From the NCBI RefSeq assembly GCF_020745735.1, contig NC_083422.1:16120001-16184000 (forward strand): DNA of 64,000 bases, written 5' to 3'. Under the pieces are notes generated by a model, which worked only from the letters and a program-made list of their open reading frames with translations, searched no databases and had not been told where the DNA came from. Source of the stretch: Hemiscyllium ocellatum (lineage: Eukaryota). The first letter of the stretch is position 1; the number at the start of each line of letters is the position of its first letter. Below, in pieces: positions 2,306-32,859 of this stretch. Position numbers and translations under genes: made by a program.

Positions 2306-2318
2306 CAACCCCCACCCC

Positions 2319-6344: not shown

Positions 6345-6382
6345 AAAAACACATGTGCACGCACACACACATGCACACTCAC

Positions 6383-6415
<33 letters not shown>

Positions 6416-7498: not shown

Positions 7499-10400
7499 TG
7501 CTGACAGGGGCATGGTGTCCTTGAGCCGCACTCCTGTGTCATCCATCCTCACAAAGAGACAGTGATGGACCCACACACAGATCTTTTGCCAGTTTCCACT
7601 CAGGGCACTCCACTTCCACTCTACCTGACACTTTCTCACCCCCAAGGAGGGGCAGCTTGCCACTAGCAAGAGGACACCTGGTGTGTGTAGGACATCCATA
7701 TACAAGACACCTCCACCCCCCCACCACCCCCCGCCATCCCCCCACCTCCATCCCCCATCCGTGTCACCCCTCCAAACCTTCAAGGCCAATGTGTTTCACA
7801 TCAGAGCAGACTGCCTCAACCCAGGAAGTGAACTGAGGTTTGGTGGGAGGGAGAGAATATAGCAAGCTCATTGAGGGCACAATGGAGGCACGGGGGAAGA
7901 ACACTTTGGTGTAAACAGAAATGTGCACAGGAATGTTGATGACATTAATTTGCATGGATCTGCTTTTGAATGTGTGTGCGTAGACACTGAATCTCTCTAA
8001 TGCTTGTTTCCATTTGTGTGTGAATGTAAGCTGATAGAGATTTGTTCAGCAGTGGCTATGCCAGGGAGGGGCCACGCACAGAGAGAGTCAGTGCTGTAAC
8101 ATAGAGTCAACAATCTGTCATGCCTGCCATCCTAATCCCCTAATCTCTCTCTCACCAACACTCTGACTTTGTTTAATTTTAACTGATTGACTTTGTTAAA
8201 TTTTCAGAAAACAGTTTCATACTGAGCCACAACATTCCCAAACTCAACTTGAAATTCTCCAAATTACAATCAATCTATGCACAGATCTTTAATTCTGAAG
8301 TTACTAATTAACTCTGGTTACTAAATCTAAAATAGCCTGTTACTAGTAGTTTGAGAATACATTCTTACAGAAAACTACTTCAACTGCACTAGATAAATGC
8401 AAACCAATCCTGCTAACTTGCTTTGCCTAGTCTCACTGAAGGTTAAAGTCCCCTATCATTATTCTATTACCCTGATTACATGCTATTCTAACTTGTTGAC
8501 TTATGTTCTGCTCAACACTACCATTCCTAATGGGGACCCATAAACTAAGATTTCTTGGCCTTTGTCATTATCTTGACCTCTAATGACTCTACTTCAAGAT
8601 TTTCAGGTCAAGCTCCGTTCCCACTGCTGTCTTTATTTCAGCTTTTATGATCAGCATTCCCCTCAACCATTGCTAGGTAAAAGCATGTATCTCCATTTTA
8701 GCCATTCATTTACCTACCTTGTTCGGCACGTCTTGTGCATTCAGGGATAGTGCCTATAACTTTATCTTTCTGATAATTTTCTGTGATAGGGCATTAATCA
8801 TTAATAATTGCTCTTTACTTTTGTTACGACCTCTTCATTGAGGCTTCTGGTGGTGCAGTGGTAGTGTCCGAGCCAGGAGACTTGGGTTCAAGTCCCACCT
8901 GTCCCAGAGATGTGTAATAACATCTCTAAGCAACTCATTAAAAAAAATTAAAACTCTTTCACAGCAAGCTAGATTTGATCCAAATTAATACTCTCTTCAT
9001 CAGCATTGACACTTGTCTTCAGGTTTGTAAAGGTATCCTAACTTCAGCCCTCCCCATCACGTGCCCTTTTTTTTTAAAGCTCTAATCATTACACCTAACT
9101 ACTGGATTTGGGCTGTTAATGTTGGAACCTCCCTCCTTTGCCTGAAGAGATCCCATTAACTCCAGGCTTTTAATCTTTCATGCTACATGAATGTTGCTGC
9201 CAAGAGCAGCTCTTGTTGCCCATCTCTAATACCTCTTGAGCTGGGTGGGTCATCAGCCCCATCAGAGGGACATGAGGAGTCCCCACGTTGCTGTGTCTCT
9301 GGAGTCAGGAGAGGACCAGCAGATTTCAGGAGAAGGGAACCCAGTTGGGGTTTATGGTAATTGGTGATAGTTGCTATAAGATGCTTTCTATTCCAGATTT
9401 ATGAATTGAATTTAAAGTCTGTGAATCCATGTTGAAGGGAAACATCTGTGAATTTCTAGTCCAGTGACACTTCTACCACTTCCTGTCCTTTGTATTGAAG
9501 CACCAGCCCCCCATATCACTCTCACAGTCATGTATTTAACCCTCTATCCTTGATTCCTGACTGTAACTCAGATATCATGCAGTGGATGTTATTTTTTAAG
9601 GTTTTGCTTTCAAATTTGGATCCCAGCTCCTCAAGCTACCTCAATAGAGATAACTTTTTAAATATGTCAATATCATTACGCGACCAATGATTATATTTCC
9701 CTCCTCATTGACCAACTTCCTCTTCAGTCGCAACTACATAAGTCTGACAATGCTAGGTAATATGCTGACAGATGATTGGCTGGCAGATCCCTGGAGAGAA
9801 CTACAAACAGTCTCCAAAGAAGAGGAGGTTCCAGACTAAAGGCAAGTATAGGCTATGGTGGGGCCTGGATGACCGGTGATCCTCAAAGGGGGTATGGCCA
9901 CCCCTTACCTGATACCAGCTTTTGCAGCTAAACAAGTGGGATCTAGCCATGAAGTGACCAGTTAAAAGCCTTAGTAGGCCCAAGCATAGGCGCACCATCC
10001 AATTCCTCTGGCATTGTTCATCAAATAAGAGACAGGTTAGGCAGAGGGTGAGTTTGCTGTATTGTAAGGGCTGCACGTACCTTCACACCCAACAGCAAGG
10101 AACTGTCAAGTTCTGCCCTTCCTTCCAAATGTGCACTCTCCTGATGGGTGTCGAATGTTCTCACATTAATCTTAATGTAATTAAGCTACATTCCTGAGTT
10201 TCAATTGAATTGAACTGAATTTATTTTCACGTGTGACGAGGCGCAGTGAAAAGATTTGTCTTGCGAGCAAAACAGGCAGATCACAGATTTAAGGAGGATA
10301 GATAGTAAATAATAGGTAAACAGCAGCAAATCCAAAAACACAGGTACAGGCAAATGTTAACAGTTTGTGAGTCCATTCAGTATTCTAACAACAGAGTGGG

Positions 10401-10644
10401 TAGCTTCACCCCATTTCCAGGCTCGGCCTAAACTCACCCCCATTGAACTCTAGTGTGTCTGGATCACAGCGAGTTAAACAGATATCCAAATATAGATGGC
10501 CTGTTGTCATCACTGATTAACATTTCAATTCGGTAAACGTGGAGCAGCTTGTGCAAGAAGCAGCAAAATCCGTTCTATAGATACTAGCAGTGGAAATCTG
10601 TGAGAAAAATAAATTTAAAAAATGCTGCAGAAACTCAGCAACCA

Positions 10645-10895
10645 TTTAGGACTGAGATGAGGAGAAATGTATTCACCTAGAGAATTGTGAGTGTGGAATT
10701 CATTGTCACAGAATGCACTTGAGAGCAAAACATTGAGTGTTTTCAAAAAGGCATTTGAATATGGTTCTTAGGGCTAAAGGGATCAAAGGGTATGGGATGA
10801 AAGCAGGAACAGGGTACTGAGTTGGACAATCAACTGAGGTATATTCAATGGTGGAGCAGGTTCAAAGGGCTGAATGGCCTACTCCTGCTCCTATT
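10645..10895 (+). mobile_element. Old CR1 3' fragment
   Basis: atttaggactgagatgaggagaaat...gggctgaatggcctactcctgctcctat tail. Confidence 0.75.
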
Positions 10896-11714
10896 TTCTT
10901 TATCGTTGTAAATAAGCTTTAATGAGAACATAGCATAGATTTCACCTGGGAAACCCATTATCCAAATTGCTGTAAACAATATTAAATATTGCAGTGCCAA
11001 AATATGAGACAAAAATATGCCCACAATCTGAGTGGGCGAAGAACATAGACGCTAAGGTGGACCGATTTGCTAATAAAACATTTAATTAAACCTAGACTTT
11101 ATCTTCTCTAGCCTGGTAACTGAACCTCAGCATGTCACATTTGCCAAGTAATCCCAATTGTCCCTGATGTTTTTATTTACTTATTTTTAGAAGTCTGTAT
11201 AAATTTACACCTAAATGAGTTCAGCAGCTGTGTTAAAATATCAAAATAATATTCAGGCTTTTTGACGGTGGGAGCCTCCTATGTTCAACATGGTTCTGCT
11301 TCTTTCAGGTTTTCCCATGTAACATGGGTTTGCGATATTGCTGGTTGTTATCAACTGCATTCTATCAATAATAGCAGGACAAGAATGGATTTGATAACAG
11401 GATGATGCTGTACATTGTGATGGAGCAGGACAGCAGCAGGGCTATGCAAGAGACTATGGGGAAAGGACAGAATAATCCATATGAGTTGAATGTGATTGCA
11501 GAGAGCAGTAACATGTACAAAAATTTAAATAAAAAAGTCGGCAGAGTCAGGTTAGAGTTATTCATCAGGAGAGGGAACCAATTTAGAACATCGCTCTTCT
11601 CAAATATCTTTTCAAAATAAACAAGGCAGAAGAATTTAGAAATCACTGACTTTCTTTAGCAACCTTGTTGCTCTGGCCACAATTCCCAAACTATTAATTT
11701 CAATGAAAAGCTGC

Positions 11715-12030
11715 ATTCACAATAGTTCCTCCGACAGCACCTTCCAAACTCACCAACCTCTACCATCTAGAAAGACAAGGATGCAAGGGAACACCACCAA
11801 CTGCAAGTGCTCCTCTCGACTGCTCATTATTCTTTCTTGGACCTACATCCTGTTTGCTTCACTGTTGTTGTCAAAATCTGGGAATACCCTTCCTAAGAGC
11901 ACAGAGGGTGTACCTACAGCACGTGCACTGTCCCAGTTCAAGAAGACAGCTCACCACCATCATCTTCTCATTGGTCATTCAAAATGGGCTGTAACCTTTG
12001 CCTGAGCCAGTGATGCCCAGATCCCATGAA
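11715..12030 (+). mobile_element. LINE/SINE-type 3' repeat fragment
   Basis: ttcaagaagacagctcaccaccat...agccagtgatgcccagatcccatgaa, a tail resembling that of the SINE at 46268. Confidence 0.55.
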
Positions 12031-12250
12031 ATGGAGATGTCAGTGTTGGACTGGGGTGTACAAAGTTAAAAATCACACAACACCAGGTTATAGTCCAACA
12101 GGTTTAATTGGAAGCACTAGCTTTCGAGCGTTGCTCCTTCATCAGGTACTTGCGGTACTACTGCCTGATGTAGGAGCAGGGCTCCAAAAGCTAGTGCTTC
12201 CAATTAAACCTGTTGGACTATAACCTGGTGTTGTGTGATTTTTAACTTTG
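12031..12250. mobile_element. Palindromic mini Penelope-like element (two inverted family B tails)
   Basis: Inverted arms, each with a hammerhead-derived motif. Exact 13-bp TSD CAGATCCCATGAA at 12018-12030 and 12251-12263. Confidence 0.85.
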
Positions 12251-12359
12251 CAGATCCCATGAAGACATTTTAAAAATCTAAACTGGTTCATATGCCTTGT
12301 GTTGAAGTTCAAATTTGCTCTTCATTTGCACCAATTTTAATAAAAACAATTAAGATGTC

Positions 12360-12920
12360 AAATTTATAAGACACTTGTTATACCACAAATGGAGTGATTG
12401 TGTACAATTCTGGGCATCACATTATTAAGAAGGAGAGGAACACACTGCAGAAAGTGCAGAAGCAGCTTTCTGGAGTGGTAATAAATCTCAACTATGAATT
12501 CGATTGAAAGTGCTGTGGCTGCTTTCTTTGGAATGAAGAATGCTATGACGAGATTTGGTAGAGGTTTTCCAAACCATGAGCAGCCTACACAGAGTAGATG
12601 GGGAGAAACTGTTCCCACTTGTAAAGGATCAAGAACAAGTGGGCATAGATTTAAATTGATCTGCTAAAGAAGCAAAGGTTAAGTGAGGAAAAACTATTTC
12701 ACTCTGCAAGTAGTTAGGGCCTGAAAATGTGTTAGAGACATGTTCAACTGAGGCATTCAAGATGGCAAGAGATGATTATTTGGATAAAAAAATAATGTGT
12801 AAGAAAATGGAGGGAGGTTTGATGCAGGAGATTGGCACTGCGTAATGATGCTCAGTTGACAGACTGGTGCAAACACAAAGGGCAAAATGGCCTCCTTCTG
12901 CAAAGTAACAATTCTGTGAT
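12360..12920 (+). mobile_element. Degenerate CR1 3' fragment
   Basis: LYKTLV.PQMEx.VQFWA..Y-like translation and the 3' tail. Confidence 0.7.
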
Positions 12921-14436
12921 TCTCCAAGATTCTGAGAAATGCAGCACTGCAAATGCAGCACAACTTGGTAACTCCCTATGTCAGTATACTGCCTGAATAA
13001 CACTTGCAGCCACACTGTACCGGTATAATTGCCATTGAGAAATTCACGGAGAAAGTGAGGATGAGATTGGCCTAATAGTGATTATTTGGGATTGTATCCC
13101 ACATCTGAATTTCCCAAGAGCATGGCTGTAATTCACAACAAGAAGAGTGTTGATTTGTTTTAATAGGCTTCATGCCCCACTGACCATCTCTGTCTTCGGA
13201 AACATTCAGCAGTGCAATTTGACAGTCGGGACGCAATGGGGGAAAAGTAGAAATTTAATAATGTCTCATCTATTAAAAAGAGTGAGCTACAGATTACTAG
13301 GGTCATCCATCTCATTATGTCTTTATCCCTTGCCGAAGTTTCTATTCCCTTGAGTATAGAAGATTAAATGGTAAGGTAGTCAAGGTGTTTTAAATGATTT
13401 AAGAATTTGATGAGATAAATAGTGAGGGACGGTTGGGAAAATCCTTGACAAATGGCATAGTCTTCACATTAGAGCAAAGGTAATTTCAGAGACAGCACTT
13501 CTGCATACAAGTAACTATGGAAACCTATCTCTGTTTCTCGGTGTCAATTGAAAGCTTCAAACCTGAGATTGTTGGATTATTAGTAATTGTGGTGTAGTGG
13601 TAGTGTCCTTATCACTAGGCCAGGAGGCCAGAAAGCCAGTGCAAATGATTTTGAGCAATACATCAGTTCAGGACAAGTTTAAGGGGAATCGACTATTCCA
13701 GTTCAAACAATTGCCAGCAGTTATTGTTCAACTTGTATTACTTTTAATATAAATAACAATAATAATAATAAATATGTCATTAGTTCTACAGATATTCAGT
13801 TATCTTCAAGCACTCAAGAACAATAACTGAATATTGTTCTCTCAGTTTATATTTTAAAACATTCCATTATCCAAATGGAGCTCCTCTTCCCTGACCCATC
13901 CACTGCCACCTTTCTTGCTAAAATGGTTACTTTATATCTCTCAAATTGCCATGAAGCCTGACGTTACTCCTTCAACTGATAGTGCTCCAAAGGAGCCCAT
14001 CCTGGTCCCTTCGCTCCTCTGAATGTCACTCATAAATAAGGTGGCAACCCACGGCATATATCTATTCTTTAATGAATTACACCATCAATAAGAACTATCC
14101 CTGATTAACTGGTGCTAAGATCACCAAGTTTGGTGTATTCTGGAGTGGGGAGGGAATCATGGCTGAGCTTTCTGACCAAGCTGGCTACCTCCTCCTCTTA
14201 CTCAGAAAGCACATATTCAAGGTGTATTCCCATTTCTCTTCATTCGTTCACAGCATGTGGGCAATGCCAACATTTATTGCCCAAACAGATTTGCCCTTGA
14301 GATGGTGGTAGTCTCCTCACTGCTAACGAAAGCAGCATTGAGTCACGAGAAGCTCAGAAAAATAAGAATTGCACAAAGCTTCAGTCAGGTTCCTTGTAGC
14401 ACTGGAGGAAGAAGAGCATTCGGGCCTGCACTGCTC

Positions 14437-15148
14437 TCAAATGGTCAGGTGACATGTGATCAGACTGTCACATGATCAATGCCTCCAACGAGACTGTCAC
14501 ATGATCAATGCCTCCAACACCACAAATGTACGTGGCTGCACCCATCTCACATCCACACTGCCGGGCTGTTTTACCCTGCCTTGGGCTGGATTTTGGCTTC
14601 CACCAGTTGGTCACAGCATCACTCACACCAGTTTCAGCCAGAGCTGAACTACAGAGAAGCCCCTCCTCCCCTTCACCCCGGTCTCATTGTATCATTACAT
14701 GGAAACAACTTTTCTAATCGAAACCTGTCAGAAGCTTGTACACTTCCATGAAAAAGCTCCTCAATTGCCTTTGATCCAAGTAAAATTATCTCAACTTCTC
14801 CAGTCTCACAGAAACTGAATTATTCCAGTCAAGGTTTATTGCATAAGTTCTGAAGACAACATTGTGGAATGGACTGCAAAAGATCAGGATCAAGGCCCTT
14901 TGCTCCGCTGTCACACTGAGGAGTTTATCCAGGATTTCTCTTGCACGTCCTATCATAGGTCTCATATTATAAACTGGACTCCATTTTCTAAATCAATCTC
15001 CAGATGGAGAGATATTGGATGGTCCTTGTTTCAGATCAAGTTCCTAAACTCAGGTTGTTAGCTCTGGTTGGAGGCATTGGTCATGTGACAGTCTGGTTGG
15101 AGGCATTGGTCATGTGACAGTCTGATCACATGTCACCTGACCATTTGA
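14437..15148. repeat. 82-bp inverted repeat pair (14437-14518 / 15067-15148), each arm with a 29-bp tandem duplication
   Basis: tcaaatggtcaggtgacatgtgatcagactgtcacatgatcaatgcctccaac and its reverse complement. Confidence 0.9.
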
Positions 15149-15356
15149 TGAATCCCATCTGATCGTATGGCCAGAACTTCTTTCATGTTTCTAGGCCTAC
15201 ACAATGAGTCTTTGTTTGTCAGGATATAAAGGCCCCCTCAAGAAGGCATCATTCAAGAGGTCAATAGCAGGAGAGTGGAACCACACTCCTGAATATGATG
15301 CTGCAGAAGATTAATGATGTATCAAAGGCAGGAAGAATGAATGGGATATTCAACCA

Positions 15357-15557
15357 AGTTAAAAATCACACAACACCAGGTTATAGCCCAACAGATTTAA
15401 TTGGAAGCACAAGCTTTCGAGCACTGCTCCTTCATCAGGTAGTTATACCAGTGCTTCGAAAGCTAGTGCTTCCAATTAAACCTGTTGGACTACAACCTGG
15501 TGTTGTGTGATTTTTAACTTTGTACACCCCAGTCCAACACCGGCATCTCCAAATCAT
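15357..15557. mobile_element. Palindromic mini Penelope-like element (family B)
   Basis: Inverted tails. Exact 12-bp TSD GATATTCAACCA at 15345-15356 and 15558-15569. Confidence 0.85.
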
Positions 15558-16498
15558 GATATTCAACCACATTTTGATGTAGAATCTCAAGTCACCTCAC
15601 AGTGCCTGTCGAATCCTTCACTGTTGCAGAGAGTCATCAAACAAACACATCTTGCAGGTCACCCTATCTCACTCTTTCTGGGCATTCATTCACAGCACCA
15701 TCTGATTACCCATCGTTGACACTCATCATCATCATAATACACAGAGCTCTCCTTCTCAGTAAGCCTTCATGAATGTTCTCCATTCATTCTTTCAGTCCAT
15801 TCATTTCACTAACTCAGAAAGCCTGTTTCCACTCTTGCAGGAGAAGAGATCGGAGAACACATGACAGAGACAGAGAACCAGAGCTGATCTTGCCACCATC
15901 TGCACACTGACATTCACGGAGAGAGAAATGTGGAAATGGAATCAAGTCACTTTGTGCCTGGCCGTTGGACGTAGAGATCTGCTGCTGTCTTAGTGATAAA
16001 ATAAAATGTCAGACAGAGACATGGTTGACAACACTCACTCTTGTTGAATTGATGGTAGCAGCCATTGAAATAGGATAATATTATCAAGACATTGTAGCAC
16101 AGAAGGAGGTCAATCAATCTTTCAAGTCTTGTCAGATATCTGGACAGGAATCCAGTCAGTCCTTTACCCCTGCTTCAATTTTAAAATGTTTATTTCCTTC
16201 GAGTGTCCTTCTAATTTTTTTTCAAAATTGTTCAGAATTTTTCCTTTCATCATTCTCATAGGAAACAGGTCATAGGTCATTACTGCTACCCATGTAAAAA
16301 TAGTGTCCCTCTTCATTGCATCTCTCACCCAAAATGGTAAATCTCTGCCCCTCCCCCAACCCCGCTACCTTTCTCATTGTACCATTACATGGGAAGAACT
16401 TAGGGTAAAAAATGAGGTCTGCAGATGCTGGAGATCAGAGCTGAAAATGTGTTGCTGGTTAAAGCACAGCAGGTTAGGCAGCATCCAAAGAATAGGAA

Positions 16499-16534
16499 AT
16501 TCGACGTTTCGGGCATAAGCCCTTCATCAGGAAT
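16499..16534 (-). ncRNA. Intact minimal hammerhead motif (family A)
   Basis: Reverse complement is ATTCCTGATGAAGGGCTTATGCCCGAAACGTCGAAT. Confidence 0.8.
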
Positions 16535-17438
16535 GAGGAGAGTGTGCCAAGCAGGCTAAGATAAAAGGTAGGGAGGAGGGAGTTGGGGGAGGGGCGATGG
16601 AGATGTGATAAGTGGAAGGAGGTCAAGGTGAGGGTGATAGGCTGGAGTGGGGTGTGGGCGGAGAGGTCAGGAAGAAGATTGCAGGTTAGGAGGGCGGTGC
16701 TGAGTTGAGGGAACCGACTGAGACAAAGTGGGGGGAGGGGAAATGAGGAAACTGGAGAAATCTGAGTTCATTCCTTGTGGTTGGAGGGTTCCCAGGCGGA
16801 AGATGAGGCACTCCTCCTCCAGCCGTCGTGTTGTTATGTTCTGCCGGTGGAGGAGTCCAAGGACCTGCATGTCCTCGGTGGAGTGGGAGGGAGAGTTAAA
16901 GTGTTGAGCCACGGGGTGGTTGGGTTGGTTGGTCCGGGCGTCCCAGAGGTGTTCTCTGCAGCGTTCCGCAAGTAAGCGGCCCATCTCCCCAATATAGAGG
17001 AGGCCACATCGGGTGCAACGGATGCAATAGATGATGTGTGTGGAGGTACAGGTGAACTTGTGGCGGATATGGAAGGATCCCTTGGGGCCTTGGAGGGAAG
17101 TGAGGGAGGAGGTGTGGGCGCAAGTTTTACATTTCCTGCGGTTGCAGGGGAAGGTGCTGGGAGTGGAGGTTGGGTTGGTGGGGTGTGTGGACCTGACGAG
17201 GGAGTCACGAAGGGAGGGGTCTTTGCGGAACGCTGATACGGGAGGGGAGGGAAATATATCCCTGGTGGTGGGGTCCATTTGGAGGTGGCGGAAATGACGG
17301 CGGATGATACGTTTATACGGAGGTTGGTGGGGTGGTAGGTGAGAACCAGTGGGGTTCTGTTTTGGTGGCAGTTGGCGGAAATGACAGCGGATCATCAACT
17401 TTACCAACACCTTCCATCCCGACCTCAAATTCACCTGC

Positions 17439-18605
17439 ACCACCCCCCACCTTTTCCTCCGCTACATCGATGACTGTATCGGCGCTGCCTCGTGCTCCCA
17501 CGAGGAGGTTGAACAGTTCATCAACTTTACCAACACCTTCCATCCCGACCTCAAATTCACCTGGACTGTCTCAGACTCCTCCCTCCCCTTCCTAGACCTT
17601 TCCATTTCTATCTCGGGCGACCGATTCAACACAGACATCTACTATAAACCGACTGACTCCCACAGCTACCTGGACTACACCTCCTCCCACCCTGCCCCCT
17701 GTAAAAACTCCATCCCATATTCCCAATTCCTTCGTCTCCGCTGCATCTGCTCCCAGGAGGACCAGTTCCAACACCGCACAGCCCAGATGGCCTCCTTCTT
17801 CAAGGACCACAGATTCCCCCCAAACGTGATCGACAATGCCCTCCACCGTATCTCCTCCACTTCCCGCTCCTCCGCCCTTGAGCCCCGCTCCTCCAACCGT
17901 CACCAAGACAGAACCCCACTGGTTCTCACCTACCACCCCACCAACCTCCATATACAACGTATCATCCGCCGTCATTTCCGCCACCTCCAAATGGACCCCA
18001 CCACCAGGGATATATTTCCCTCCCCTCCCCTATCAGCGTTCCGCAAAGACCACTCTCTTCATGACTCTCTCGTCAGGTCCACACCCCCCCCAACCAACCC
18101 AACCTCCACTCCCGGCACCTTCCCCTGCAACCGCAGGAAATGTAAAACTTGCGCCCACACCTCCACACTCACTTCCCTCCAAGGCCCCAAGGGATCCTTC
18201 CATATCCGCCACAAGTTCACCTGTACCTCCACACACATCATCTATTGCATCCGCTGCACCCGATGTGGCCTCCTCTATATTGGGGAGATGGGCCGCTTAC
18301 TTGCGGAACGCTGCAGAGAACACCTCTGGGACGCCCGGACCAACCAACCCAACCACCCCGTGGCTCAACACTTTAACTCTCCTTCCCACTCCACCGAGGA
18401 CATGCAGGTCCTTGGACTCCTCCACCGGCAGAACATAACAACACGACGGCTGGAGGAGGAGTGCCTCATCTTCCGCCTGGGAACCCTCCAACCACAAGGA
18501 ATGAACTCAGATTTCTCCAGTTTCCTCATTTTCCCTCCCCCCACCTTGTCTCAGTCGGTTCCCTCAACTCAGCACTGCCCTCCTAACCTGCAATCTTCTT
18601 CCTGA
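17439..18605 (+). pseudogene. 5'-truncated PLE ORF: RT C-terminus, Cys-rich linker and GIY-YIG endonuclease
   Basis: One open frame: FLRYIDD (YIDD at 17463-17474), LKFT, LPFLD, YKPTDSHSYL, SQFLRLR.ICS, PCNRRKCKTC, IIYCIRCTRCGLLYIGE, REH, GMN. The Cys-rich linker suggests the Neptune group (inference). Confidence 0.9.
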
Positions 18606-18737
18606 CCTCTCCGCCCACACCCCACTCCGGCCTATCACCCTCACTTTGACCTCCTTCCACCTATCACATCTCCATCGCCCCTCCCCCAACTCCCTCCTCC
18701 CTACCTTTTATCTTAGCCTGCTTGGCACGCTCTCCTC

Positions 18738-18773
18738 ATTCCTGATGAAGGGCTTATGCCCGAAACATCGAAT
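18738..18773 (+). ncRNA. Hammerhead motif (family A), stem III palindrome mutated
   Basis: ATTCCTGATGAAGGGCTTATGCCCGAAACATCGAAT. Confidence 0.6.
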
Positions 18774-19294
18774 TTCCTATTCCTTGGATGCTGCCTAACC
18801 TGCCATGGGAAGAACTTATCCTTGTCTACCTTATCGAAACCTTCCAAAATCTTGTGGAATGGACTGCAAAAGATCAGGATCAAGGCTCTTCGCCATTAAC
18901 ATGAAGGGAACGATTGGGGGGAGAATATTCTCGAAGTGTCCACCCACTTATTGCACAAGACTGGTTGAGGTATCCATGGTCTGGTGGATGGATGGTGATG
19001 CTCCAGGCCAGTCCCAAGGATTGAGCAGCTTAGAGTTTCCCAACCCAGGTATGGAGATGCTGAGAGCAATTTATCATGGGAGAGCTACTGAAGTAGCTCA
19101 CATCAATGGATTCCAATGAATCTGAGGAATATGGTAAACAGGTAAAATGGAGATTCGTCAAGCAGTTTGCGCTTGTTGTGTGTTTCTATGTGAGTGAACA
19201 TAATTGGAACAATAGGCACCTATAACATCATGCACACCCATGTTCTAGCACCTCTCTCCCTGGAGATAAACTGGGCTGGTTGTTTTGGTTGAAC

Positions 19295-19315
19295 GGTCTC
19301 AGCTGCTAGTTTTAC
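19295..19315 (+). promoter_or_regulatory. Degenerate ISRE position of gene A
   Basis: GGTCTCAGCTGCTAGTTTTAC aligns without gaps to the gene B ISRE within homologous flanks. There are 6 differences in 21 nt. Confidence 0.7.
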
Positions 19316-19406
19316 AGTCAGGGAAGAAAGCACATTGAGTGCAGTTCTCTCTCAACTCACTGCTGGACGTTCTGGTGGAGCACGAACTTGCCATTTGATC
19401 AGCATA

Positions 19407-19411
19407 ATGAG
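19407..19411 (+). CDS. IFIT5: IFIT5-like gene A, coding exon 1 (ATGAG)
   Basis: cataATGAG|GTAAAC donor. The phase-2 join to AG|C at 26619 gives MSTTQKDALKV, the typical IFIT micro first exon. Context is homologous to exon 1 of gene B. Confidence 0.8.
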
Positions 19412-19758
19412 GTAAACAAATTATTGAAATTCTACCTGTTTTAGACAGGTAAATATGTAGGTTATTGAAAAATGAGCTCATTTTCAGAATTATTTTGCTA
19501 TAAATGACAAAGGAACTGACACACTTAAAGCAGGATTACTTGTCACAGTGAGGCATACAGGTAAATGTTTACTGTTGCACTGGAACTAGTGAGTGTCAGA
19601 AGAAATAAGAGTCATAAGGCAATTTATAGTGTTTTGTCAGGTAATCTTTTAAGGAAAACCAACCTTAATTTTCACGCAGATATTCCAAAAACACACAAAT
19701 CAAACTTTAATTAAACTCCACACTGTCATAATGTTGAATCGAATATTTTGTAAATATT

Positions 19759-19876
19759 GGGAGAAAGTGAGGACTGCAGATGCTGGAGATCAGAATTGAG
19801 AGTGTAGTGCTGGAAAAGCACAGCAGGTCAGGCAGCATCCAATTTTCCCATTTTTTCCAGCACCACATCTTGATTC
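19759..19876. mobile_element. Short inverted PLE-tail insertion in intron of gene A
   Basis: Tail in - orientation then a short + piece. TSD TGTAAAT(A/G)TT at 19749-19758 and 19877-19886. Confidence 0.7.
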
Positions 19877-19989
19877 TGTAAATGTTCTCAAACAGATGTG
19901 ATGAAACATGACTATCTGGAGTGATGGACTTACATAAAACTGTGGATTGTGGTTCATCCTGATGAATGAACTTAAACTCATTCGGGACT

Positions 19990-20184
19990 AAGAATCACAC
20001 AATGCTAAGTTGTAGTCCAACAGCTTTCTAAGCACTGCTCCTTCATCAGATGGTTTATCACAACTACCCGATAAAGGAGCAGTGTTTGGAAAGTGAGTGC
20101 TTCCAAAAAACCTGTTGGACTATAACCTGGCATTGTGTGATTTTTAACTTTATCCACCCTGGTTCAATGCCGTCTCCTCCAAAA
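19990..20184. mobile_element. Older palindromic mini PLE (family B)
   Basis: Same arms as 12031 and 15357 but more decayed. Imperfect TSD CATTCGGGACT / CATTCAGAACT. Confidence 0.75.
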
Positions 20185-20688
20185 CATTCAGAACTGTAAT
20201 TCCCAGGGTAACAGAAAACACATTACATTGCAGAATGTAACTGACTATCCCTGATGTGAGTTTGGTTGAAGTGGTCACTGAGCTGATAAGGAGAAGATGG
20301 GCTTAAAAACTTGCTGCAGTCACTCCTGCAAGGTACCATCACTCCAGAGCAGCTTAATCCTGCTCTCTACTCCAGTAACTGTTCTGTCACTGTTCAATCT
20401 CCATGTCTCCCATTCTCTATTCATTAATAGGTGTCATAAATAGTTACAAATATTATTCAGATGTAAAACAAATTTACCTTTAAAATACAATTTGAGTTAT
20501 TCCTAGTTTTATTATCCTAATATTATGTGTCTGTTGGTGTTTGAAGTTACTAACAATTAGATGAAAAGATAGATCTATATATAACATGTTTCACAACCTC
20601 AGAAAAGCCCAATGCATTTTACAGTCAGCGAAGCGGCTTTAAAGTGTAGTCACTGTTGTATTTTAAGAGGTAATTATAAAATGTTTAT

Positions 20689-21038
20689 GGCTGGCAGGGT
20701 GGCACAGTGGTCAGCACTGCTGCCTCACAACACCAGGAACCCAGGTTTGATTCCAGCCTCAGACAACTGTCTGTGTGGAGTTTACATGTTCTCCTTGTGT
20801 CTGCATGAGGTTCCTCTGGGTGCTCCGGTTTCCTCCCACAGTCCAAAGATGTACAGGTTAGGTGGATTAGCCATGCTAAATTGCTCATAGAGTCTAGGGG
20901 TGTGCAGGTTAGGTGGAGTAGCTGTGGGAAATGCAGGGTGACCGGGATAGAGTAGATCTGGGAGGGCTGGTGTTCAGAGGGTCGGCGTGGATCTGATGGG
21001 CTGAAAGGCCCGATTCCACAGTGTAGAGATTCTATGAA
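20689..21038 (+). mobile_element. HE1/V-SINE-like SINE
   Basis: tRNA-like head, central domain and tail as at 1768. Confidence 0.88.
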
Positions 21039-23464
21039 GCACACACAATTTGCACATGCCAAGTTACACAATCTGTTTTGATGATGTCTGCGAAGGGCTT
21101 ACATATCAGCTGGGGCATTGTGAAGATATCCTTTGTTCTTCCAACAGCACCATCGGAAACCTCACACCCACCTAAGAGGCCAGAGTGAGCCTTATTTGAA
21201 TATCTCACTCAAATGCTGATGTCCCTACCATGGGACACCTCCCTCAGCATCAGCAGTGCCAACCTCAGTCACAAGGCCAGGTCTGTGGAGTGAGGATTGA
21301 ACCCACAATTTGCCAACTTAGACTTAACAAATGCATGAGGTATGACAACAGCTAAGACCAGCTGGAAAAAGTTTGAAAATATTGCTCTGAAGTATCAGGG
21401 TGAACACAAATAAAGAGTGTTTTTCCCAAATTATAATGAGCAGGAGGTCACCAGAGAAAACAAAAAGCCTTCATATGGGTGCACAGTCAGCTGGGACACT
21501 GAAAAACACAACATCTGACTTTGTTTTCTGGGCCTCTGGGATGTTTGGCCAAAGGATCGCATCACAGGTTCTCTGAGCTAGCATTGCAGAGACAAATACT
21601 TCATAGTTTCAACAAAAAACCCACAGAATTTCATGCTGCACACTGCATCTTAACCTTAGTACAGTGCAGGAAAAGAAAACTCAGTTACCCGCAGGAAAAG
21701 CCGGGTGTAGTAGTTTGAATTAAAAGGCAAAGGCTGGAAATTCACCAGGAACTGGTTGGGAATTACAGAAAGGATGGGGATGGGGCGGGGAGTGGCGGGG
21801 GGGGGGGAAGGGTGGAATTGGAAAAGACTGGCCACATGCACATGGGGTAGATGGAGTTGAGAATGAGCTGGGCTGGCTGAAGGATGAAGGATGCCTGTGT
21901 AGCTTGGACAGCAAGAAAGCATGAAAAATTTTGCATTGAACTAACACCTCATCACATCTTGTAGGAATGTCCCTCTACCATTCAGGTGAAATTATTTATT
22001 TTGAAATACATTCATTGTAGATTTGAGGGGAAATATGATAACTCAGTTGTGTGACAATAACTTGCATTTATGTATCACCTTCTGATATGATGTGGTTATC
22101 TGTATGTTACTGCTTGTAACACATACTGCAGAGAGTTGTGCTGTTTTTGAAATAAATATAATTGGAGTTTATTAACAGATAACAATGAACATAATATGAT
22201 ACTTTAAACTTGCATATGCAGTCTGGGTTATATGCCCACTTAGATTGCTGCTATATTCCATATATTGTTGACTTTCTGATTCTCAGAATGACCAGCAGAA
22301 TGGCTGGCAGTTTAGCTATCAGACTAACTTTATGACTGGACAGAGAAAAAAACACAGACCACTGTGTACCAAGCTGCTTTAAAGGTATACCATTTTTCTT
22401 AATTTAGTGTATTACAGCGGCACAGGAATGTAATCAGACAAAAACTGAGGCAAGAACTGATACAAAGAAAAAGAAGGAACTGCTTAGAGGGTGAAAATAA
22501 GTTGAATAGAATGGATAATCTTTAAGGAGAGGTTGTCTTGAGTTCTGAGATTTTGGAACTCTTGGGGCTGAACCCAACAGTGGGTGAGAGGAGAATGGAC
22601 ACAAGGCCAGAGATTGGTGAATGCAGAGCTCTCAGAGAATTCTAGGGCTGAAGGAGATCACAGAGACAGGCAAGAGTGAGGTCATGAAGGGACTTGAACA
22701 CCAGGATGACATTATTCCTTCTGTGATATTTGTGAACTGGAGCCAATGGAAGTCAGAAAGACCAAACGTAATGGATGATGGAGGAGAGGAACTTATGCAT
22801 GTCACAGAACTTTGTGAAGTGCAGCAGATGAGAAATTGGCCGGGAACTCTTTTAGGTAATTGAGTCTAATGTGTGAGGGGTTCAGTAGAAGATGGGCTGC
22901 TGACTTGCAGACAAGGTGATGCTAGAGGGATAGATCTAGATGGTCTTTGTGATGGCGAGGATCTGTGCTGCTTAACTTACAAAGGTGTTCAAAGATAGTA
23001 TCACAATGAATGGCCACCAGCTGTTTTCGGTGGTGTAGCTCGGGGAAAGAGAGATTGTTGGAAAGTGCAACTTTTTCTTTTGCTTCAAATAATGCCCTAG
23101 AAACCTTAACATCATCTGAATCACCAGAACAGCTCAAGTCTGCCTTGCTGAAGAATACTGTACTGGATGATATTCATCCAGATTAGAATAAGTTTACTAG
23201 GGCAGGATTTTATGCAGTTCTTTGGACTCTACATCCTCCTCATTCTCACAAAGGGAGTCCACTTCAGATGAGGCAGCTGCTGCCCTTCATGAATATTTCT
23301 GGGAACAGCAGAAATAGCTTTCAAAAAAGACTTCCTCACATATCTCAGGAGTAAGGCCCTGCCTTCGAGAGCAACTGGCCATTTTTGTCAGGCAGCAGCT
23401 CTGTTGTCCCAGCAGCGCCAAGGTTGAATGGTGGCCATTATTGGGACTGCACAAAAGTGGAAGT

Positions 23465-23605
23465 GGGTACTGCAGATGGTGGAGATTTGAGTCAATCCTC
23501 ATTGTGGCCTCATTCCTGATGAAGGGCTTTTGCCCAAAACGGTGATTTTCCTGCTCCTCGGATGCTGCCTGACCTGCTGTGCTTTTCCAGCACCATTTTA
23601 GTCTT
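23465..23605. mobile_element. PLE tail fragments with degenerate hammerhead motif
   Basis: cctgatgaagggcttttgcccaaaac...gatgctgcctgacctgctgtgcttttccagcac. Confidence 0.7.
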
Positions 23606-24092
23606 GTCACTACTGGGACTGCAGGCAGTCCCCAAAGGGGTGGAGCCTTGGGGTCTGGGAGTAGGCTTTGAGAAGCTGGTGGTGGGGAGGAAACATAATA
23701 ATGTAAGAAATAGGAGCAAGAGTAGGCCAATATTTAAGATCATGGCTGAACTGCCCCTGGCCTCAGATCCTCTTTAGTGCCAGCTCCTCATAGCCCTCAA
23801 TTCCTTAATATTTCAAAACTCTACCTCCCTCCTTTTTAAATCCTTTCAATGATGCAGCCTCCACAACTCATTAGGATAAAGAATTCCAGACATTCAAAAC
23901 CCTCTGAGTGGAAACATCGTCACAACATCTACCCTGTCAAGTCCACTCACAATCCTGTACGTGTCAATAAGATCATTCCTCATTTTTTTTCTAAATTGTA
24001 ACAAGTAAAGGCTGAACCTGTTTAGCCAACAGGTTAATAAGTCAACCCTTCATTCCAGCTGAATGAATCTCTTTTGAACTGTCTCCAATACA

Positions 24093-24632
24093 GGGAGAAA
24101 GTGAGGATTGCAGATGCTGGAGATCAGAGTCAAAAGATGTGGCACTGGAAAAGCACAGTCAGCAGCTGAGGAGCAGGAAAGTCAACGTTTAGGCCACACA
24201 TGCACTCAACAACCACCACCCCATGGCTGACCACTTCAACACCCCCTCCCACTCCGCCAAGGACTTGTGAGTCCTGGGCCCCCTCCTCCACCAAATCCAA
24301 TCCACCTGATGCCTGGACAAGCTCACTTGTCCGGACTTGTCCTACCTGCCTAGCTCTTTTTCCACCTATCCACTCCATCCTCTCCTCCCTGACCTATCAC
24401 CTTCATCTCCTCTCCCACTCACCCATTGTACTCTATGCTACTCTCTCCCCACCCCCACCCTCCCCTAGCTTATCTCTCCATGCTTCCAGCTTACTGCCTT
24501 TATTCCTGATGAAGGGCTTTTGCCCGAAACGTCGATTTCGCTGCTCCTTGGATGTTGCCTGAACTGCTGTGCTCTTCCAGCACCACTGATCCAGAATCTG
24601 GTTTCCAGCATCTGCAGTCATTGTTTTTACCT
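24093..24632. mobile_element. Inverted PLE insertion (- tail, then + EN remnant and tail)
   Basis: Tail-out arrangement. Hammerhead core CTGATGAAGGGCTTTTGCCCGAAACGTC at 24506-24533. Confidence 0.8.
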
Positions 24633-24658
24633 TGTCTTTTTAACTACTTGATACATCT

Positions 24659-25530
24659 TGTTATAAAGTGGAGGTTGATCCCCCTCTGAGAGCTAAAACC
24701 AAAACACCCAGAAAGGCTCACCTTGCCCTATAATTTATTAAAAGAAGTGTGAAAAGTGATATAACCAGCCTCTTATCTTCAAGCTGTTATAAAGAAGTGG
24801 TTAAATTAAACAAACTCCTTTCATTCACTCTATAACCAACTAGTAACAATTCACTTACCTAATTTTAACAGTCAACAAATTAAGTGAAGCACCAATGAAC
24901 CAAACAAATCCCCCTTGACTACTAATTATTCCCAAATAAAACAAAATCGTAATGGTATGCTGTTCCAATAGATTCAAGTCCCACTTACATAAACTAAAAT
25001 AAAAATTAGAATTGAGTCTCTCTAAATTACAGCCAGATTACATCTTCTGGAATGTTCTGTGTTTTCTCATTGATTTTCTATCAGGACTGCCTTCTCCTTC
25101 GAATTCTTGTGTCAGGAATTTGGGTGGTGAGCCACAATACCATGGTAAATAGATGGTGCTTACTCTAAGAGCTGAGAGCTAATACCTCTTGGCAGATGGC
25201 AGTTGGTTCTCCTATTGATTTTCAAATGCTCTCTTCTTTTATACTTTTGATGATCTATCAACTGTTTTACAATTGGATTGGTCCTTAGTTGTCAAAACCA
25301 TTAGATTTAAATTTAATAGGTTTTTGTTAGCTCGGGGTCTGATTTAAATTGATTGGCTAAATTCGAACTGGTTGTCTTGACAGCAAAACAAAACTTTTAC
25401 CTGGATTACTAACCTCACAGCTCTTTTAATCCAAATGTTTCAATTCAGGGGCTCTGTGTACCTGCAAACCCACAGACGTCCTTTTTGAATCGCGAAGCAC
25501 AGAGAAAAAAACATCTTTTAAAGGGACCAC
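24659..25530. mobile_element. Possible solo LTR-like repeat
   Basis: Begins TGTTATA like the LTR-like element at 55669 and interrupts a - strand CR1 remnant. The right end and TSD are not resolved. Confidence 0.4.
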
Positions 25531-25559
25531 GCAATGCTTTCCCCATTTTACAATTTTAT

Positions 25560-25900
25560 GCACACTAACTTTGTAATAACTTACATGATAACTTTTGGTG
25601 TTTCGTGCACAAGAACACCTAGGTCTCGACAGCACTTTACTTTTTTTGGAGTCTGTCTCCATTTAAATATTAGTCTGCTTTTGGATTCTTCCTACTAAAG
25701 TGCATGCGCTCAAATCTCCCTATATTAGAGTCCATCTGCCAAAGTATTGGCCCCTCACTCAACCTACCTATGTCCCTTTGCAGATTCCTCATTTCCTCAT
25801 TACACCATACCCTCCCAGCTAATTCTTTTACTATAAGCAAATTTGGATACATTACTCTCTGCTCCCTGCTCCACCTCATTAATATAGATGATAAATAGTG
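25560..25900 (-). mobile_element. CR1 RT fragment
   Basis: LFIIYINE..(SKFA)..LQRDIGRLSE..LWQM..N. Confidence 0.75.
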
Positions 25901-26618
25901 AAGAGAAAAGAGAAGTTGGATCTTGGAAAAGAAGGCTCCAATAGACAAACAAAACCCTCAGGGCCTTGGCTAACACCAGCCAGTGCTGGTAAATCTGCCA
26001 GGCTTCCCCAGCCCCATTCAATTTGAAATACGTAAGGGCTGGGGATGGAGATCAAATAAGCAATGTCAATGCCTTATGTTGAATTTCCAAAAACACCCAG
26101 ATGCAGACAATCCAGTAAGGGAAGGAAATGAATATCTATCCAACAGTGCTGTACAATGCTGAGGATACTTTATGATGAACTATCTTTCCTGTTTTAGAGG
26201 TATGTACATATGCTACATGTTAGGTTGGAGAATGAACATTCCCATAGTCACTCCGAGAGAGAGTCACTGAGACTGATATTATAGGAGTCAACTACTTTCG
26301 AAATAGCACTTAGGATTTGTCAATGAGACACCTCCTGGTGAGAAGTAGACATATTTGAAAAAAAACAGGCAGATGGAGTGCATGAAAAATGCTCTTGTTC
26401 CTGAGATGTCGCTGTGCATTTGATGAGAAAACAGCAGGTAGTGGGTCAGCCATTAGAAAGGAAACAGATGCAAAACCAGCCAAGGGAATCTTTCTGAGTT
26501 TCTGGGCTGTATAACTCGTGGTTTCATTGTCAGTAAGTTTGCAGAGGTTAGGTGTCGATGCAGGGGAAATGCATTAACTGGCATGAGCTAAATTGTGATG
26601 AATTTTATTCTCCTGCAG

Positions 26619-28071
26619 CACCACACAGAAGGATGCGTTGAAAGTGAATCTCGATCAGCTTCAATGTCACTTCACGTGGACTTCGAAGAAAAAAACCATC
26701 GACTTGGATGATATGAAACAAAGATTAGAAGATACAATACAGACAAGTGTGAAACCTCAAGCCCGGTTTTACAATCACTTTGCTTTTATAAACTGTCAGC
26801 AAGGAAAATATGAAGAGGCAATTCAGAATTTAAAGGAAGCTGAAAAGATTCTGAAGGAGAGTCATGGTGATGATTTTGAGAAGAGAATCTTGGTCACCTA
26901 TGGAAACTATGCCTGGGTTTATTATCACATGGACCGACTGGAGGAGGCTCAGTCCTACCTCGACAAGCTGGAGACAGTCTGTAAGCTATTTCCTGAAGCC
27001 TCTCGGTTTGCAGCAATGATACCTGAGGTTTATGGGGAGAAGGGTTTGTCACTGTTGAAATCTGCTGGCCAATATTATGAAGAGGCAAAGGAATGTTTTA
27101 AAAAGGCTCTAGAGAAGGATCCTGACAACATTGAGTGGAATGTTGGCTATGCCACTGTTCTGTATCGTCTGGAAGAGTTTTCTGGAACCCCTGAGAGTCA
27201 CAAACCCACTCAATCAATGAAACAACTTAGACGTGTGCTGGAGCTGGATCCTGATCATGCTGAAGCCATGGTGCTGTTAGCTTTAAAACTACAAGAGTTA
27301 AGTCAAGAGGGGGAAGCATCCACATTAGTTGAACGAGCGTTGCAGAAGTCTCCTGATCACCCACACGTGCTTCGATATGCAGCAAAGTTTTACAGAATCA
27401 AAGGAGATGTTGAAAGAGCTTTGAAAGTGTTGAAGACAGCAATGGAAATTACCCCCAACTCTACCTTCTTACACCATCAATTCGGTCTGTGTTACAGAAA
27501 GAAACTAATGTCATTGCTCAAAAATCCACTCAGCAAGAACCCTAGCAATCCTGCTTTTCAACAGAAAGTTGAACTGATCAAACTTTGCAAGTCTCATTTT
27601 AAAAATGCCTTCAAGCCTCGGCCATTAACCTTTATTAAGGCACAACTGGATTTTGCAGGAATATGTTCACTAAATGAAGAGTTTCCTGAAGCAGAGAAGA
27701 TCTACACCAATCTCCTGAAACTGAAAGATATCCGTCCAGAGAATAGGCAAGCAATATGTTTACAAGCTGGATTATTTCAACTATTCCAGAAAAGAGCAGA
27801 ATCAAAAGCCGTCGCCCTTTTTCTGGAAGGAATGAAAGTGAATTACAATTCCATAGAAAGAAAAAAGTGCCGTGAAAATTTGGAGAGGATCGCAACAGGA
27901 CGGCTTCGCAGGAATCCACGAGATACCGAGGCCCTTGGTGCTCTTGGCTTCCTGCATCAACTGGATGGGAAGAAGCGCAAAGCTGTGGAATACTTTGAAA
28001 AGGCCCTGCAATTTGATCAAGGCAATGAAGAATATCTCAGTGCCCTTTGTGAATTACGTCTTTCTATCTAG
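26619..28071 (+). CDS. IFIT5: IFIT5-like interferon-induced TPR protein, gene A, exon 2 (spliced product ~485 aa)
   Basis: Acceptor ttttattctcctgcAG at 26617-26618, then an open frame. IFIT motifs LQCHFTW, GNYAWVYYHM, VLRYAAKFYR, FLHHQxGLCY and C-terminus ALCELRLSI, which matches human IFIT5 as I recall it. One-to-one orthology is not established. Confidence 0.95.
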
Positions 28072-28437
28072 CTCAGTAATGAACTTGCCAGCTAAAGTTC
28101 AGCTGAAAGATGAATTAACACTCTCTAATCTATAATCAGCTTTTACCTAGTATCCACTTCACTTATATTTTGCTTAGATATTGTTCAATTGAGCATATTA
28201 TTCATGCGTATAATTTTCAGATGGCGAATTGTATTTTAGTTATTCTAAACGTCTGCTTTATTTAGGAATGTTGTCATCACTGGTGAACTAACTAACCAAC
28301 ACCCAAGAGTTATTGCTCTGTGTAGAAAGAAACAAAAACATTTGAGTTTTTTGGGATTTGGGTTAATTGATCCAATTGGACACAGCTGAAAAGAAACTGT
28401 TTTTAATTCAATTATGAACACTTAATAAGCCTGATTT

Positions 28438-29219: not shown

Positions 29220-30980
29220 ACTTCAGAGTTCCATCATGGACTCTACCAAAATCTGCTCCAGAAAAGCATTTGGTAGACATTCCACAAATTCCTTTCCTTA
29301 GGATCCATGACCAACCTATACATTGAAGTCCCCCATGATTATTGGAATACAGCTTTTCTGACACACTTTTTTCTATCTCCTGGTTTATTTTCTTCCCAAA
29401 TTCTGACTATTGCCAGGTGGCCTGAACATAACACCTCTCAGGGTCTTTTTCCCTTTGTGGTTCCTCTACACACGCACAGGTTCTACACTTTCAGACTCTA
29501 TATCACTTGTTGCTTTTGATTTAATTTCATTTCTTACTAACAAAGCAACCCACCCCCCTGTCCATCTGCCTCTTCCTTTGATAGGGCCCGTATCGTTGGA
29601 TACAGCTTCTGATCCCAGCCCTGAGTGCCTTGTAGCCACATCTCTGTGATACCCACAACAACTAATATCAATCTGCGTAACAAGCTCATTTGGAGAAAGT
29701 GAGGACTGCAGATGCTGGAGATCAGAGTCGAGAGTGTGGTTCTGGAAAAGCACAGCAGGTCAGGCAGCATCCGAGGAGCAGGGAAAAAAAAAAATCGATA
29801 TTTTGGGCATAAGCCTTTCATCAGGATGTCCTCCTGATGAGAGACTTATGCCCAAAACTTCGATTCTCCTGCTCCTCAGGTGCTAGAAGGTTATTTACCT
29901 TGTTTCATATGCTGTATACATTTAATTACAACACCCTCATTGACTGTCCCAATTCTTAATATTGTCCCTTTATCTGCTATGCCTGAAGTTACATTCCGGA
30001 TGCTTTCCACACTCTTTCTCCTATTTCTTGCTCTGGAAACTTTAAATTGCCTCTGCTCAGCTCTCACCCCACTTTTAATTTTTTTTCCATGCAACTGAAC
30101 TCTATCCCCACAAGGCTAAAGGATTTTGGTCCCAGGTGGAGCCCATCACATTGCTACAGCTCCCTCCTTCCCCAAGGCTGGTGCCAATGTCCCATGAATT
30201 CAAACCTGTTTCTCCCACATCAATCACACATTTATCTCTTAGGTATCATTGACCCTGTGCTAATTTGCTCCTGGCTTAGGTTGTGGTCCGGAGATTATTA
30301 ATACTTTTTGGTTTTGCTTTTCAATTTTGCCCCAAGCTGCTTATATTCCCTCAGCAGAATCTCTTTCCTCTTTCCATCTGCATCATTGATACGTCTGTGG
30401 ACAACAACAATGGCATCTTCCCCTCCCATTCCAGGTTGCTCTGCAGCCCAGATGAGATATCCTGACGCCAGGCAATACAGTCTCTGGGACTGTCCATCCT
30501 GTTTATTCCTCTGACTATACTATCCCTAATTGCGACTACATTTCTCTTTTTCTTTCCCCCACCACCCCGAATGGTACCACAGTGCTATGGTCAGTTTGCT
30601 TATCTTCCTTACTGTCCTTACTCTCACCCACATAGGGAGCAAGAATCTCAACTCTATTAGACAAGATCAACGGCTGAGGCTCGTTCAGCACTACCTCTTG
30701 GTTCCGTCCACTTGCCTCACTGACAGTCACCCTCCTGTCCCTGTCTGCTGACTGAATTCAAGGGAGTTAAACTGAAGGTGTGACTGTCTCCTGAAACTCA
30801 GCACCCATGTAACTCTCTGCTTCCTTGAAATGTCGCAGCGTTTGAAGCTCAGACTCCAGCTCATCAACTCTGAGTCGGACTTCCTCAAGCACTTGCTACA
30901 GACGTGGTCATTATGAACAACAAAGAAGTCCACCATCTCCCACACTATGCAGGTAAAACACATCACCTGGCCCTGTCTAT
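29220..30980 (-). mobile_element. Decayed CR1 (ORF1/esterase to endonuclease region) with an inverted PLE-tail insertion at ~29690-29885
   Basis: MMCFTCIVWE...HVCSKC zinc-finger-like ORF1 segment, and ELVTQID....VVGITEMWLQG / GGWVALLV endonuclease motifs. Confidence 0.7.
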
Positions 30981-32197: not shown

Positions 32198-32859
32198 TTC
32201 TGCACTGCATTTCTTGCCCAAAATGTTAAATCTGTGGCCCCCCTCCAGCGCTCATTGTATCATTACGTCTACCTTGAAACCTGTCACAAGCTTGTACCCC
32301 TCCATTAAATAGCTGCTCCATCTCCTTTGCTCTAAGTAAAATTGCCCCAACTCCTACAACCTGATTTACGCCAACAAAAGACTATTGTATAAATTCTGAA
32401 GCCACCATTAAGGAATGAAGTGCAAAAGATCAGGATCAAGGCTCTTTGCCATCAGCATGATGGGAAAGGCTTGGGGGGAATGTTCTAGAAGTGTCCAGTC
32501 CCTTAATGCCTGGGAGTGGGGCAAAATGTCAGTGCCCAGGTAGGAGGGTGGTGTTGCCCTAGTTAAAGGGATTGAGCAGCTTAGAGTTTCCAACTTCCAG
32601 GTGTTGGAGATGCTGAGGTCAATTCATCATGGGAGAGCTATTAAAGCATCTCACATCAGGAGATTCCAACAAAAGGTCTGAGGAATATGGTAAACAGGTA
32701 AAATGGAGATTCATCAAACAAGTTGCGCTTGTGTGTTTCTGTGTGAGTGCACAGGTCTGTGTGGATAACTGGAACAATAGGAACCCATGATATTATGCAC
32801 ATCCATATTCCAGCACCTCTCTCCCTGGAGATAAGCTGTCGTAGTTATTTTGATGAAAT

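Follow-up and report, generated by a model that had tools for sequence, protein, structure and literature searches.

Decay of the promoter-proximal ISRE in an intact IFIT gene of the epaulette shark

IFIT genes belong to the classical interferon-stimulated genes, and their association with the ISRE is believed to be as old as the jawed vertebrates. The locus analysed here raises the question of what becomes of an IFIT gene when its own promoter no longer carries this element and its protein is kept. The window, i.e., the whole stretch of 64,000 nucleotides that we have analysed, comes from Hemiscyllium ocellatum (epaulette shark) and is an IFIT cluster with three tandem genes, called A, B and C in the following, all on the plus strand and each of two exons (Table 1). 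A is an IFIT without a typical ISRE in its promoter, while its sister genes B and C have one.

Liu et al. (2013) have described a two-exon structure and proximal ISREs for IFITs across vertebrates (PMC3688568). A fits the two-exon plan, in which exon 1 consists of the 5'UTR, the ATG and two nucleotides. Its predicted splice leads from ATGAG followed by gt (19407–19411) over an intron of 7.2 kb to exon 2, which begins at 26619 with a C after the acceptor cag. The original prediction that the ORF and the splice sites of A are intact is borne out by this arrangement, with the donor gtaaac after 19411, the acceptor before 26619 and a product of 485 aa. The product ends in ...LRLSI, as does human IFIT5, and is IFIT5-like: the human IFIT5 structure 3zgq matches A end to end (residues 5–487, E 5.6e-114), and IFIT1 matches with E 3e-103. 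That is, A encodes an all-TPR protein in the class of ~470–490 aa, alignable over its full length with the solved IFITs. B and C are TPR proteins as well (Pfam families of A: TPR_2, TPR_12, TPR_19 and others), and the N-terminal L-x-C-H-F-T-W motif is present in A as MSTTQKDALKVNLDQLQCHFTW at offset 15, the same as in 62 of the elasmobranch IFIT hits. The counterpart of A in RefSeq is XP_060697758.1, which is modelled there as protein-coding. Exon-1 cassettes of the A/B or the C type were found nowhere else in the window, and the remaining long ORFs of the window gave no match in Pfam. One long open frame at 6148–7524 holds three N runs (258, 141 and 144 bases) at 6628–7498, and its readable parts are likewise without a Pfam match.

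Table 1. Coordinates of the features discussed in the text, as positions in the window
Feature	Position	Strand	Details
Transposon-derived insertion of ~3.95 kb (including a Penelope hairpin), splitting the upstream region of A	14904–18855		A 14720–14903 corresponds to B 32276–32449; A from 18856 corresponds to B from 32412
26-bp block, identical in A and B	18865–18890	+	perfect run
21-bp block, identical in A and B	19018–19038	+	perfect run
36-bp block, identical in A and B	19121–19156 (B: 32677–32712)	+	holds ATGGTAAACAG followed by gt (19131–19141); forkhead-like GTAAACA inside
23-bp block, identical in A and B	19247–19269	+	GATA-type AGATAA; ~30 bp upstream of the ISRE position
Decayed ISRE of A, GGTCTCAGCTGCTAGTTTTAC	19295–19315	+	aligned to the triple-GTTTC ISRE of B, 15/21 identical
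Core-promoter/5'UTR block, CAGTTCTCTCTCAACTCACTG	19341–19361	+	kept in A, C (CATTTCTCAATCAACTCACTG) and whale shark; lost in B
Exon 1b of A, coding part, ATGAG	19407–19411	+	then donor gtaaac; yields the N-terminus MS-TTQKD...
Exon 2 of A, remaining 485-aa ORF and stop	26619–28071	+	IFIT5-like TPR protein; Pfam TPR families; human IFIT5 3zgq match
Intact ISRE of B, AGTTTCAGTTTCTAGTTTCAT	32860–32880	+	exact; 3 x GTTTC (GAAACTGAAACT on the minus strand); 107 bp upstream of the B ATGAG
Exon 1b of B, coding part, ATGAG	32987–32991	+	then gtaaaa
Exon 2 of B, ORF of 451 aa	36643–37993	+	~35 aa shorter than A and C
Two tandem ISREs of C, AGTTTCACTTTCC and AGTTTCAGTTTC	48927–48951	+	second identical in whale shark
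SINE-like insertion of ~248 bp, between the ISREs and exon 1 of C	49024–49271		absent in the whale-shark ortholog (L001 9610–10139)
Exon 1 of C, coding part, ATGATGAG	49342–49349	+	then gtcagt; spliced exons give XP_060697874.1 of Hemiscyllium ocellatum exactly
Exon 2 of C, 486-aa product	51768–53220	+	

We have compared the 5' ends of A and B, which are homologous over 18856–19747 and 32412–33310, respectively (928 columns, JC distance 0.25, 73% identity). The length of ~0.9 kb originally given for the alignment of the two promoters therefore stands, but the alignment comprises ~440 bp upstream of the ISRE site, exon 1 and ~335 bp of intron 1, so it is not wholly promoter. The original reading of the ISRE site itself, with an exact element in B facing a broken copy at the same place in A, holds as well. 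All three GTTTC (GAAAC) units of the A site are broken, and no GAAA/TTTC core is left in it. When AGTTTCAGTTTCTAGTTTCAT was searched in A with three mismatches allowed, no match was obtained. An E-box, CAGCTG, lies inside the remnant at 19300–19305. B and C each have an ISRE less than a few hundred bp from the start site, and A has none there; for C, the SINE-like insertion means that the distance from ISRE to ATG has grown from about 140 to about 400 bp. We have ruled out an assembly error as the source of the decayed site, since the contigs of four whole-genome DNA runs span 19127–19572/19780 with no letters differing from A, these four runs being from one study whose individuals may be related. 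The runs were classed as whole-genome DNA by their even coverage of promoter and intron and by repeats at depths in the millions.

In a four-way alignment, AGTTTCAGTTTC is found in B, in C and in the whale shark, and A has GGTCTCAGCTGC at this place. As the 12-mer is present at the aligned place in both outgroups, C and whale shark, the ISRE is ancestral and was lost on the lineage of A, and the proposed loss is thus upheld by a related shark. The opposite reading, a gain of the ISRE by B, for which one may say that A and B alone cannot give a direction, is very improbable and has been rejected, as the homologous proximal promoters of C and of the whale-shark gene have the identical 12-mer and as three perfect GTTTC units would take five or six directed changes from A-like sequence. 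Apart from the ISRE and the ATG, the 5'UTR/core promoter of A (19316–19406) resembles its counterpart in C (local alignment 18/21, shuffle P=0.0005), and a similarity is also seen between A and the whale-shark gene L001 (P=0.01), while the comparison of B with C gives P=0.7. In addition, the second ISRE of C is unchanged in the whale shark, which shows that a presumably working ISRE has been conserved across the distance between the two sharks.

The number of changes tells something about the tempo of the loss. With six mismatches in 21 positions, the ISRE site of A does not depart from the background divergence between A and B (P=0.27), and if all six are placed on the lineage of A, their number is above the expected 2.6 (P about 0.05). 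These counts indicate that the site in A is simply unconstrained and not specially targeted, and that it has decayed at or above the neutral rate, being free of constraint through most of the history of A. Since the promoters of A and B are about as far apart (0.25) as the synonymous sites of the two sharks, epaulette and whale shark (0.23–0.25), the duplication that produced A and B is old. The loss of the ISRE is old as well.

The scan for regulatory motifs agrees with the original prediction that the ISRE is gone from A, and neither a replacement ISRE nor an IRF pair, GAS or NF-kB motif has been found. GAAANNGAAAC, the ISRE, is absent from 14000–26618 including the A intron; no ISRE core is found in 1–17598, so that the 19 kb before A are free of any canonical ISRE; and in 18856–19420 the scan gave neither a pair of IRF half-sites nor a GAS or NF-kB motif. 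The only core upstream of A, a single GAAANNGAAA at 17599–17608, corresponds to the chance frequency and lies inside the Penelope insertion. That insertion is bounded by a direct duplication of 38 bp (14866–14903 and 18856–18893, 36/38 identical), which may be the long target-site duplication of a Penelope-type insertion. The loss of the ISRE in A is thus uncompensated in cis.

These absences weigh on the reading that A is still interferon-inducible, which we consider possible, if on the unlikely side. Induction would then come from distant or shared ISREs of the cluster, from an IRF-E-like site or from read-through from other starts, and this joint reading has several candidates: the B ISRE at 32860, the sequence GAAATAGAAAC in the B intron at 34153, elements beyond the window, and the IRF-E-like GAAATGGAAAG at 17598–17608 in the Penelope insertion. 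The last of these is at chance level, as is the lone core that begins at 17599 in the same transposon, and both the 19 kb upstream of A and its intron have zero canonical ISREs. The cluster, however, is compact with its genes all on one strand, and A could still be made inducible from a distance, by the ISRE of B, which lies 13.5 kb downstream, or by further ISREs of the cluster. In zebrafish, distal ISREs have been found as effective as proximal ones, but the ISRE-less IFITs of the same species showed no induction (PMC3688568). Read-through finds a parallel in mouse Ifit1b, whose second start site overlaps the Ifit1 promoter (PMC7762956), and the gene models of the shark cluster do include odd upstream first exons.

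We have further asked what the coding sequence of A tells about its state. A and C share 93% identity, A and B 70%. The nucleotide identity between A and C (95.3%, 26597–28358 against 51746–53513; 58 sites of exon 2 tell the two genes apart) begins 22 nt ahead of exon 2, continues into the 3' flank and is not seen in the intron and the promoter. This limitation to exon 2 and the 3' flank points to a conversion of exon 2 of A with C, and A is therefore a mosaic of a B-type 5' end and a C-type exon 2, which is consistent with gene conversion or unequal crossing-over. The same pattern can be taken in favour of another reading, namely that A is transcriptionally dead or dying and that its exon 2 looks healthy through repeated gene conversion from C. 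We regard this reading as unlikely. Among the informative sites of A and C in Hemiscyllium and Chiloscyllium, 10 group by species, as such conversion would have it, but 12 group the orthologs, i.e., twelve A-specific residues are kept in both genera. The transposon-derived insertion, which lies ~440 bp upstream of the dead ISRE, would suit a dying gene; on the other side, the core block, exon 1b, both donors and the four upstream blocks are conserved, for which a conversion of exon 2 cannot account, and RefSeq has a protein-coding model.

The substitution pattern also speaks against a dead A. The values of omega are 0.318 between A and whale shark, 0.311 between C and whale shark, and 0.415 between A and C. 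In Tajima's relative-rate test, lineage-specific changes are fewer in A than in C, with 21 A-specific against 30 C-specific nucleotide changes (P=0.21), and the amino acid changes number 14 against 15. The branch of A has 7 synonymous and 14 nonsynonymous changes, which are too few to prove purifying selection. Overall, A shows no sign of relaxed constraint and evolves no faster than C, and conversion could help to hold its frame open, even with no selection acting on A. Orthologs of A with intact ORFs are found in two Chiloscyllium species, which also have C-like genes. Early pseudogenization, which had been put forward as one possible state of A, is disfavoured by these observations: ORF and splice sites are intact, omega against the whale shark is 0.32 and close to that of C, the rate is not accelerated, and the Chiloscyllium orthologs are open as well.

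As for expression, none of the runs that match the stretch is recorded as RNA. Two small runs guessed to be RNA, which come from one sample, contain shares of 0.41 and 0.37 of the words sampled from A exon 2 and 3'UTR, where C alone explains 0.425, and 0.00 of the words of 18856–19420, the exon-1 region of A. The absence of an A-specific signal in these runs favours a dead A; the word shares hint that C was expressed and A was not in that one sample, and they do not prove A silent. The annotation shows a similar picture, as the models of A orthologs are without the canonical exon 1: that of C. plagiosum starts in the intron (at the counterpart of 26389–26448 here) and that of C. punctatum at an internal Met. 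For the C orthologs the MMS exon 1 is annotated, while A is annotated without the canonical exon 1 in three species. Taken together, the RNA-like runs and the annotation models are weak hints of a low expression of A.

In the whale shark, a partial B-like IFIT exon 2 is seen at 928–1882 of L001 (NW_025969406.1), 7.7 kb upstream of the C-type gene. The order in the whale shark, B-like and then C-type, is that of the epaulette shark, so both gene types predate the split of the two families. An upstream region of the A/B type was not found in the whale-shark sequences L001 and L003 or in the old C. punctatum sequence L002, and L001 provided the C-type outgroup.

Upstream of the ISRE position, parts of the promoter have been retained selectively. 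Their alignment contains four perfect runs (36, 26, 23 and 21 bp), all of them upstream of this position, against 0.46 runs of >=20 bp expected (P=0.0002); a search of 18800–19800 against Rfam gave nothing. The RefSeq model of A (MVNS...) starts here, in a first exon different from exon 1b. This exon 1a, ATGGTAAACAG followed by gtaaaa, has the same phase as the canonical ATGAG. A different first exon with an ISRE of its own had been named as something that would speak against the uncoupling of A; the different first exon does appear in RefSeq, but like exon 1b it has no ISRE nearby. Should A really start with exon 1a, its dead ISRE would lie in intron 1. The N-terminus MS... is found in 62 of the elasmobranch IFIT hits, and MVNS is seen in the RefSeq model of A alone. 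The sequence ATGGTAAACAG followed by GTAAAA in the 36-bp block can be read as an alternative first exon or, if unspliced, as an upstream ORF of 4 codons.

B has its own defects. When 32881–32986 of B is set against 19316–19406 of A, the core-promoter block TCAACTCACTG of A, C and whale shark is missing in B, and B, with its ISRE kept and its ORF 35 residues short, has the appearance of the more degenerate copy elsewhere. Considering that the core block and the C-terminal end are gone from B and the ISRE is gone from A, the two copies have decayed in different places. One may go further and suppose that shark IFITs of the A/B type had a distal ISRE-independent exon 1a and an ISRE-driven exon 1b, that the copies underwent complementary degeneration, and that A has persisted over tens of millions of years as a "sentinel" IFIT, constitutive and obligately independent of interferon. 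In this scheme, which we hold to be doubtful, A would be the copy that gave up the ISRE and kept the core promoter and the full ORF, and B, equally doubtfully, the copy that kept the ISRE and gave up the core block together with 35 residues at its C-terminal end.

The explanation that we prefer, and to which we would give about an even chance when taken as a whole, is that ordinary substitutions have worn down the ancestral promoter-proximal ISRE of A, an intact IFIT5-like gene. This process probably set in shortly after the duplication from which the promoters of the A type and the B type arose. The other parts of the gene have been retained, including the core-promoter block, the ATGAG exon 1 with its donor, the four blocks upstream of the ISRE position, the acceptor and the ORF of 485 aa. 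Since the 19 kb upstream and intron 1 offer no ISRE, IRF, GAS or NF-kB replacement, a direct switching-on of the A promoter by ISGF3 or IRF3/7 is most likely no longer possible. To judge from the sequence, an uncoupling from interferon is the most likely consequence of the ISRE loss, and we hold it with middling confidence. We expect that A responds to interferon weakly or not at all and has a low basal or non-interferon (tissue-specific) expression, and its transcription may possibly begin from the conserved upstream exon 1a that RefSeq uses.

ISRE-less IFITs have been described before from mammals and zebrafish, and A is a further, independent case, from a cartilaginous fish. A typical ISRE is missing in IFIT1B of human, chimpanzee and dog and in IFIT5A and IFIT12D of zebrafish (PMC3688568). 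Like A, IFIT1B in these three mammals is a tandem duplicate with an exon 1 of ATG and two nucleotides and an ISRE-less promoter, and its neighbours keep the ISRE. Unlike IFIT1B, A arose independently in a shark, its protein is IFIT5-like and not an ortholog of mammalian IFIT1B, and its loss can be aligned base by base to the intact ISRE of the sister gene B and of the outgroups. The zebrafish genes IFIT5A and IFIT12D, which are fish paralogs with ISRE-less promoters, were not induced, as was also seen in a reporter assay for IFIT5A (PMC3688568), and this is the behaviour predicted for A. They differ from A in lineage and expansion, and in that their induction was measured in zebrafish while A is known from its sequence. 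For mouse Ifit1b, degenerate and poorly conserved ISRE-like sequences, two annotated start sites and poor expression have been reported (PMC7762956). It resembles A in its decayed ISRE, and its two start sites parallel the candidate first exons 1a and 1b; its distal start, however, overlaps the ISRE-bearing Ifit1 promoter, whereas exon 1a of A has no ISRE nearby. We have found no literature on the regulation of shark IFITs.

Seen in this context, A is a cleanly polarised and independent example of an ISRE that was lost while the protein was kept, in which an antiviral effector would be uncoupled from interferon as in IFIT1B. If A is constitutive, it offers a natural test of whether a pre-positioned IFIT protein is useful. 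In addition, the promoters of A, B and C amount to a ready-made set of natural mutants with which the function of an ISRE could be dissected for the first time in a shark. Judged on its letters alone, A is an ordinary step in the birth-and-death evolution of an immune gene cluster.

Two further stretches of the window recall the first exons of Chiloscyllium models. In the A intron, 170–230 nt before exon 2, positions 26389–26448 encode MLLFLRCRCAFDEKTAGS, the N-terminus of the A-like model of C. plagiosum. We have rejected this stretch as an alternative first exon in H. ocellatum, as splicing from its canonical GT donor would put exon 2 out of phase and no GT stands at the place where the phase would be kept. 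The second stretch, at 30571–30950 and thus 1.5–2 kb upstream of the B promoter, encodes the N-terminal 40 residues (MVPQCY...PTLC) of the B-like XP_043569077.1 of Chiloscyllium plagiosum, which suggests either a far-upstream alternative first exon of B or an annotation artefact.
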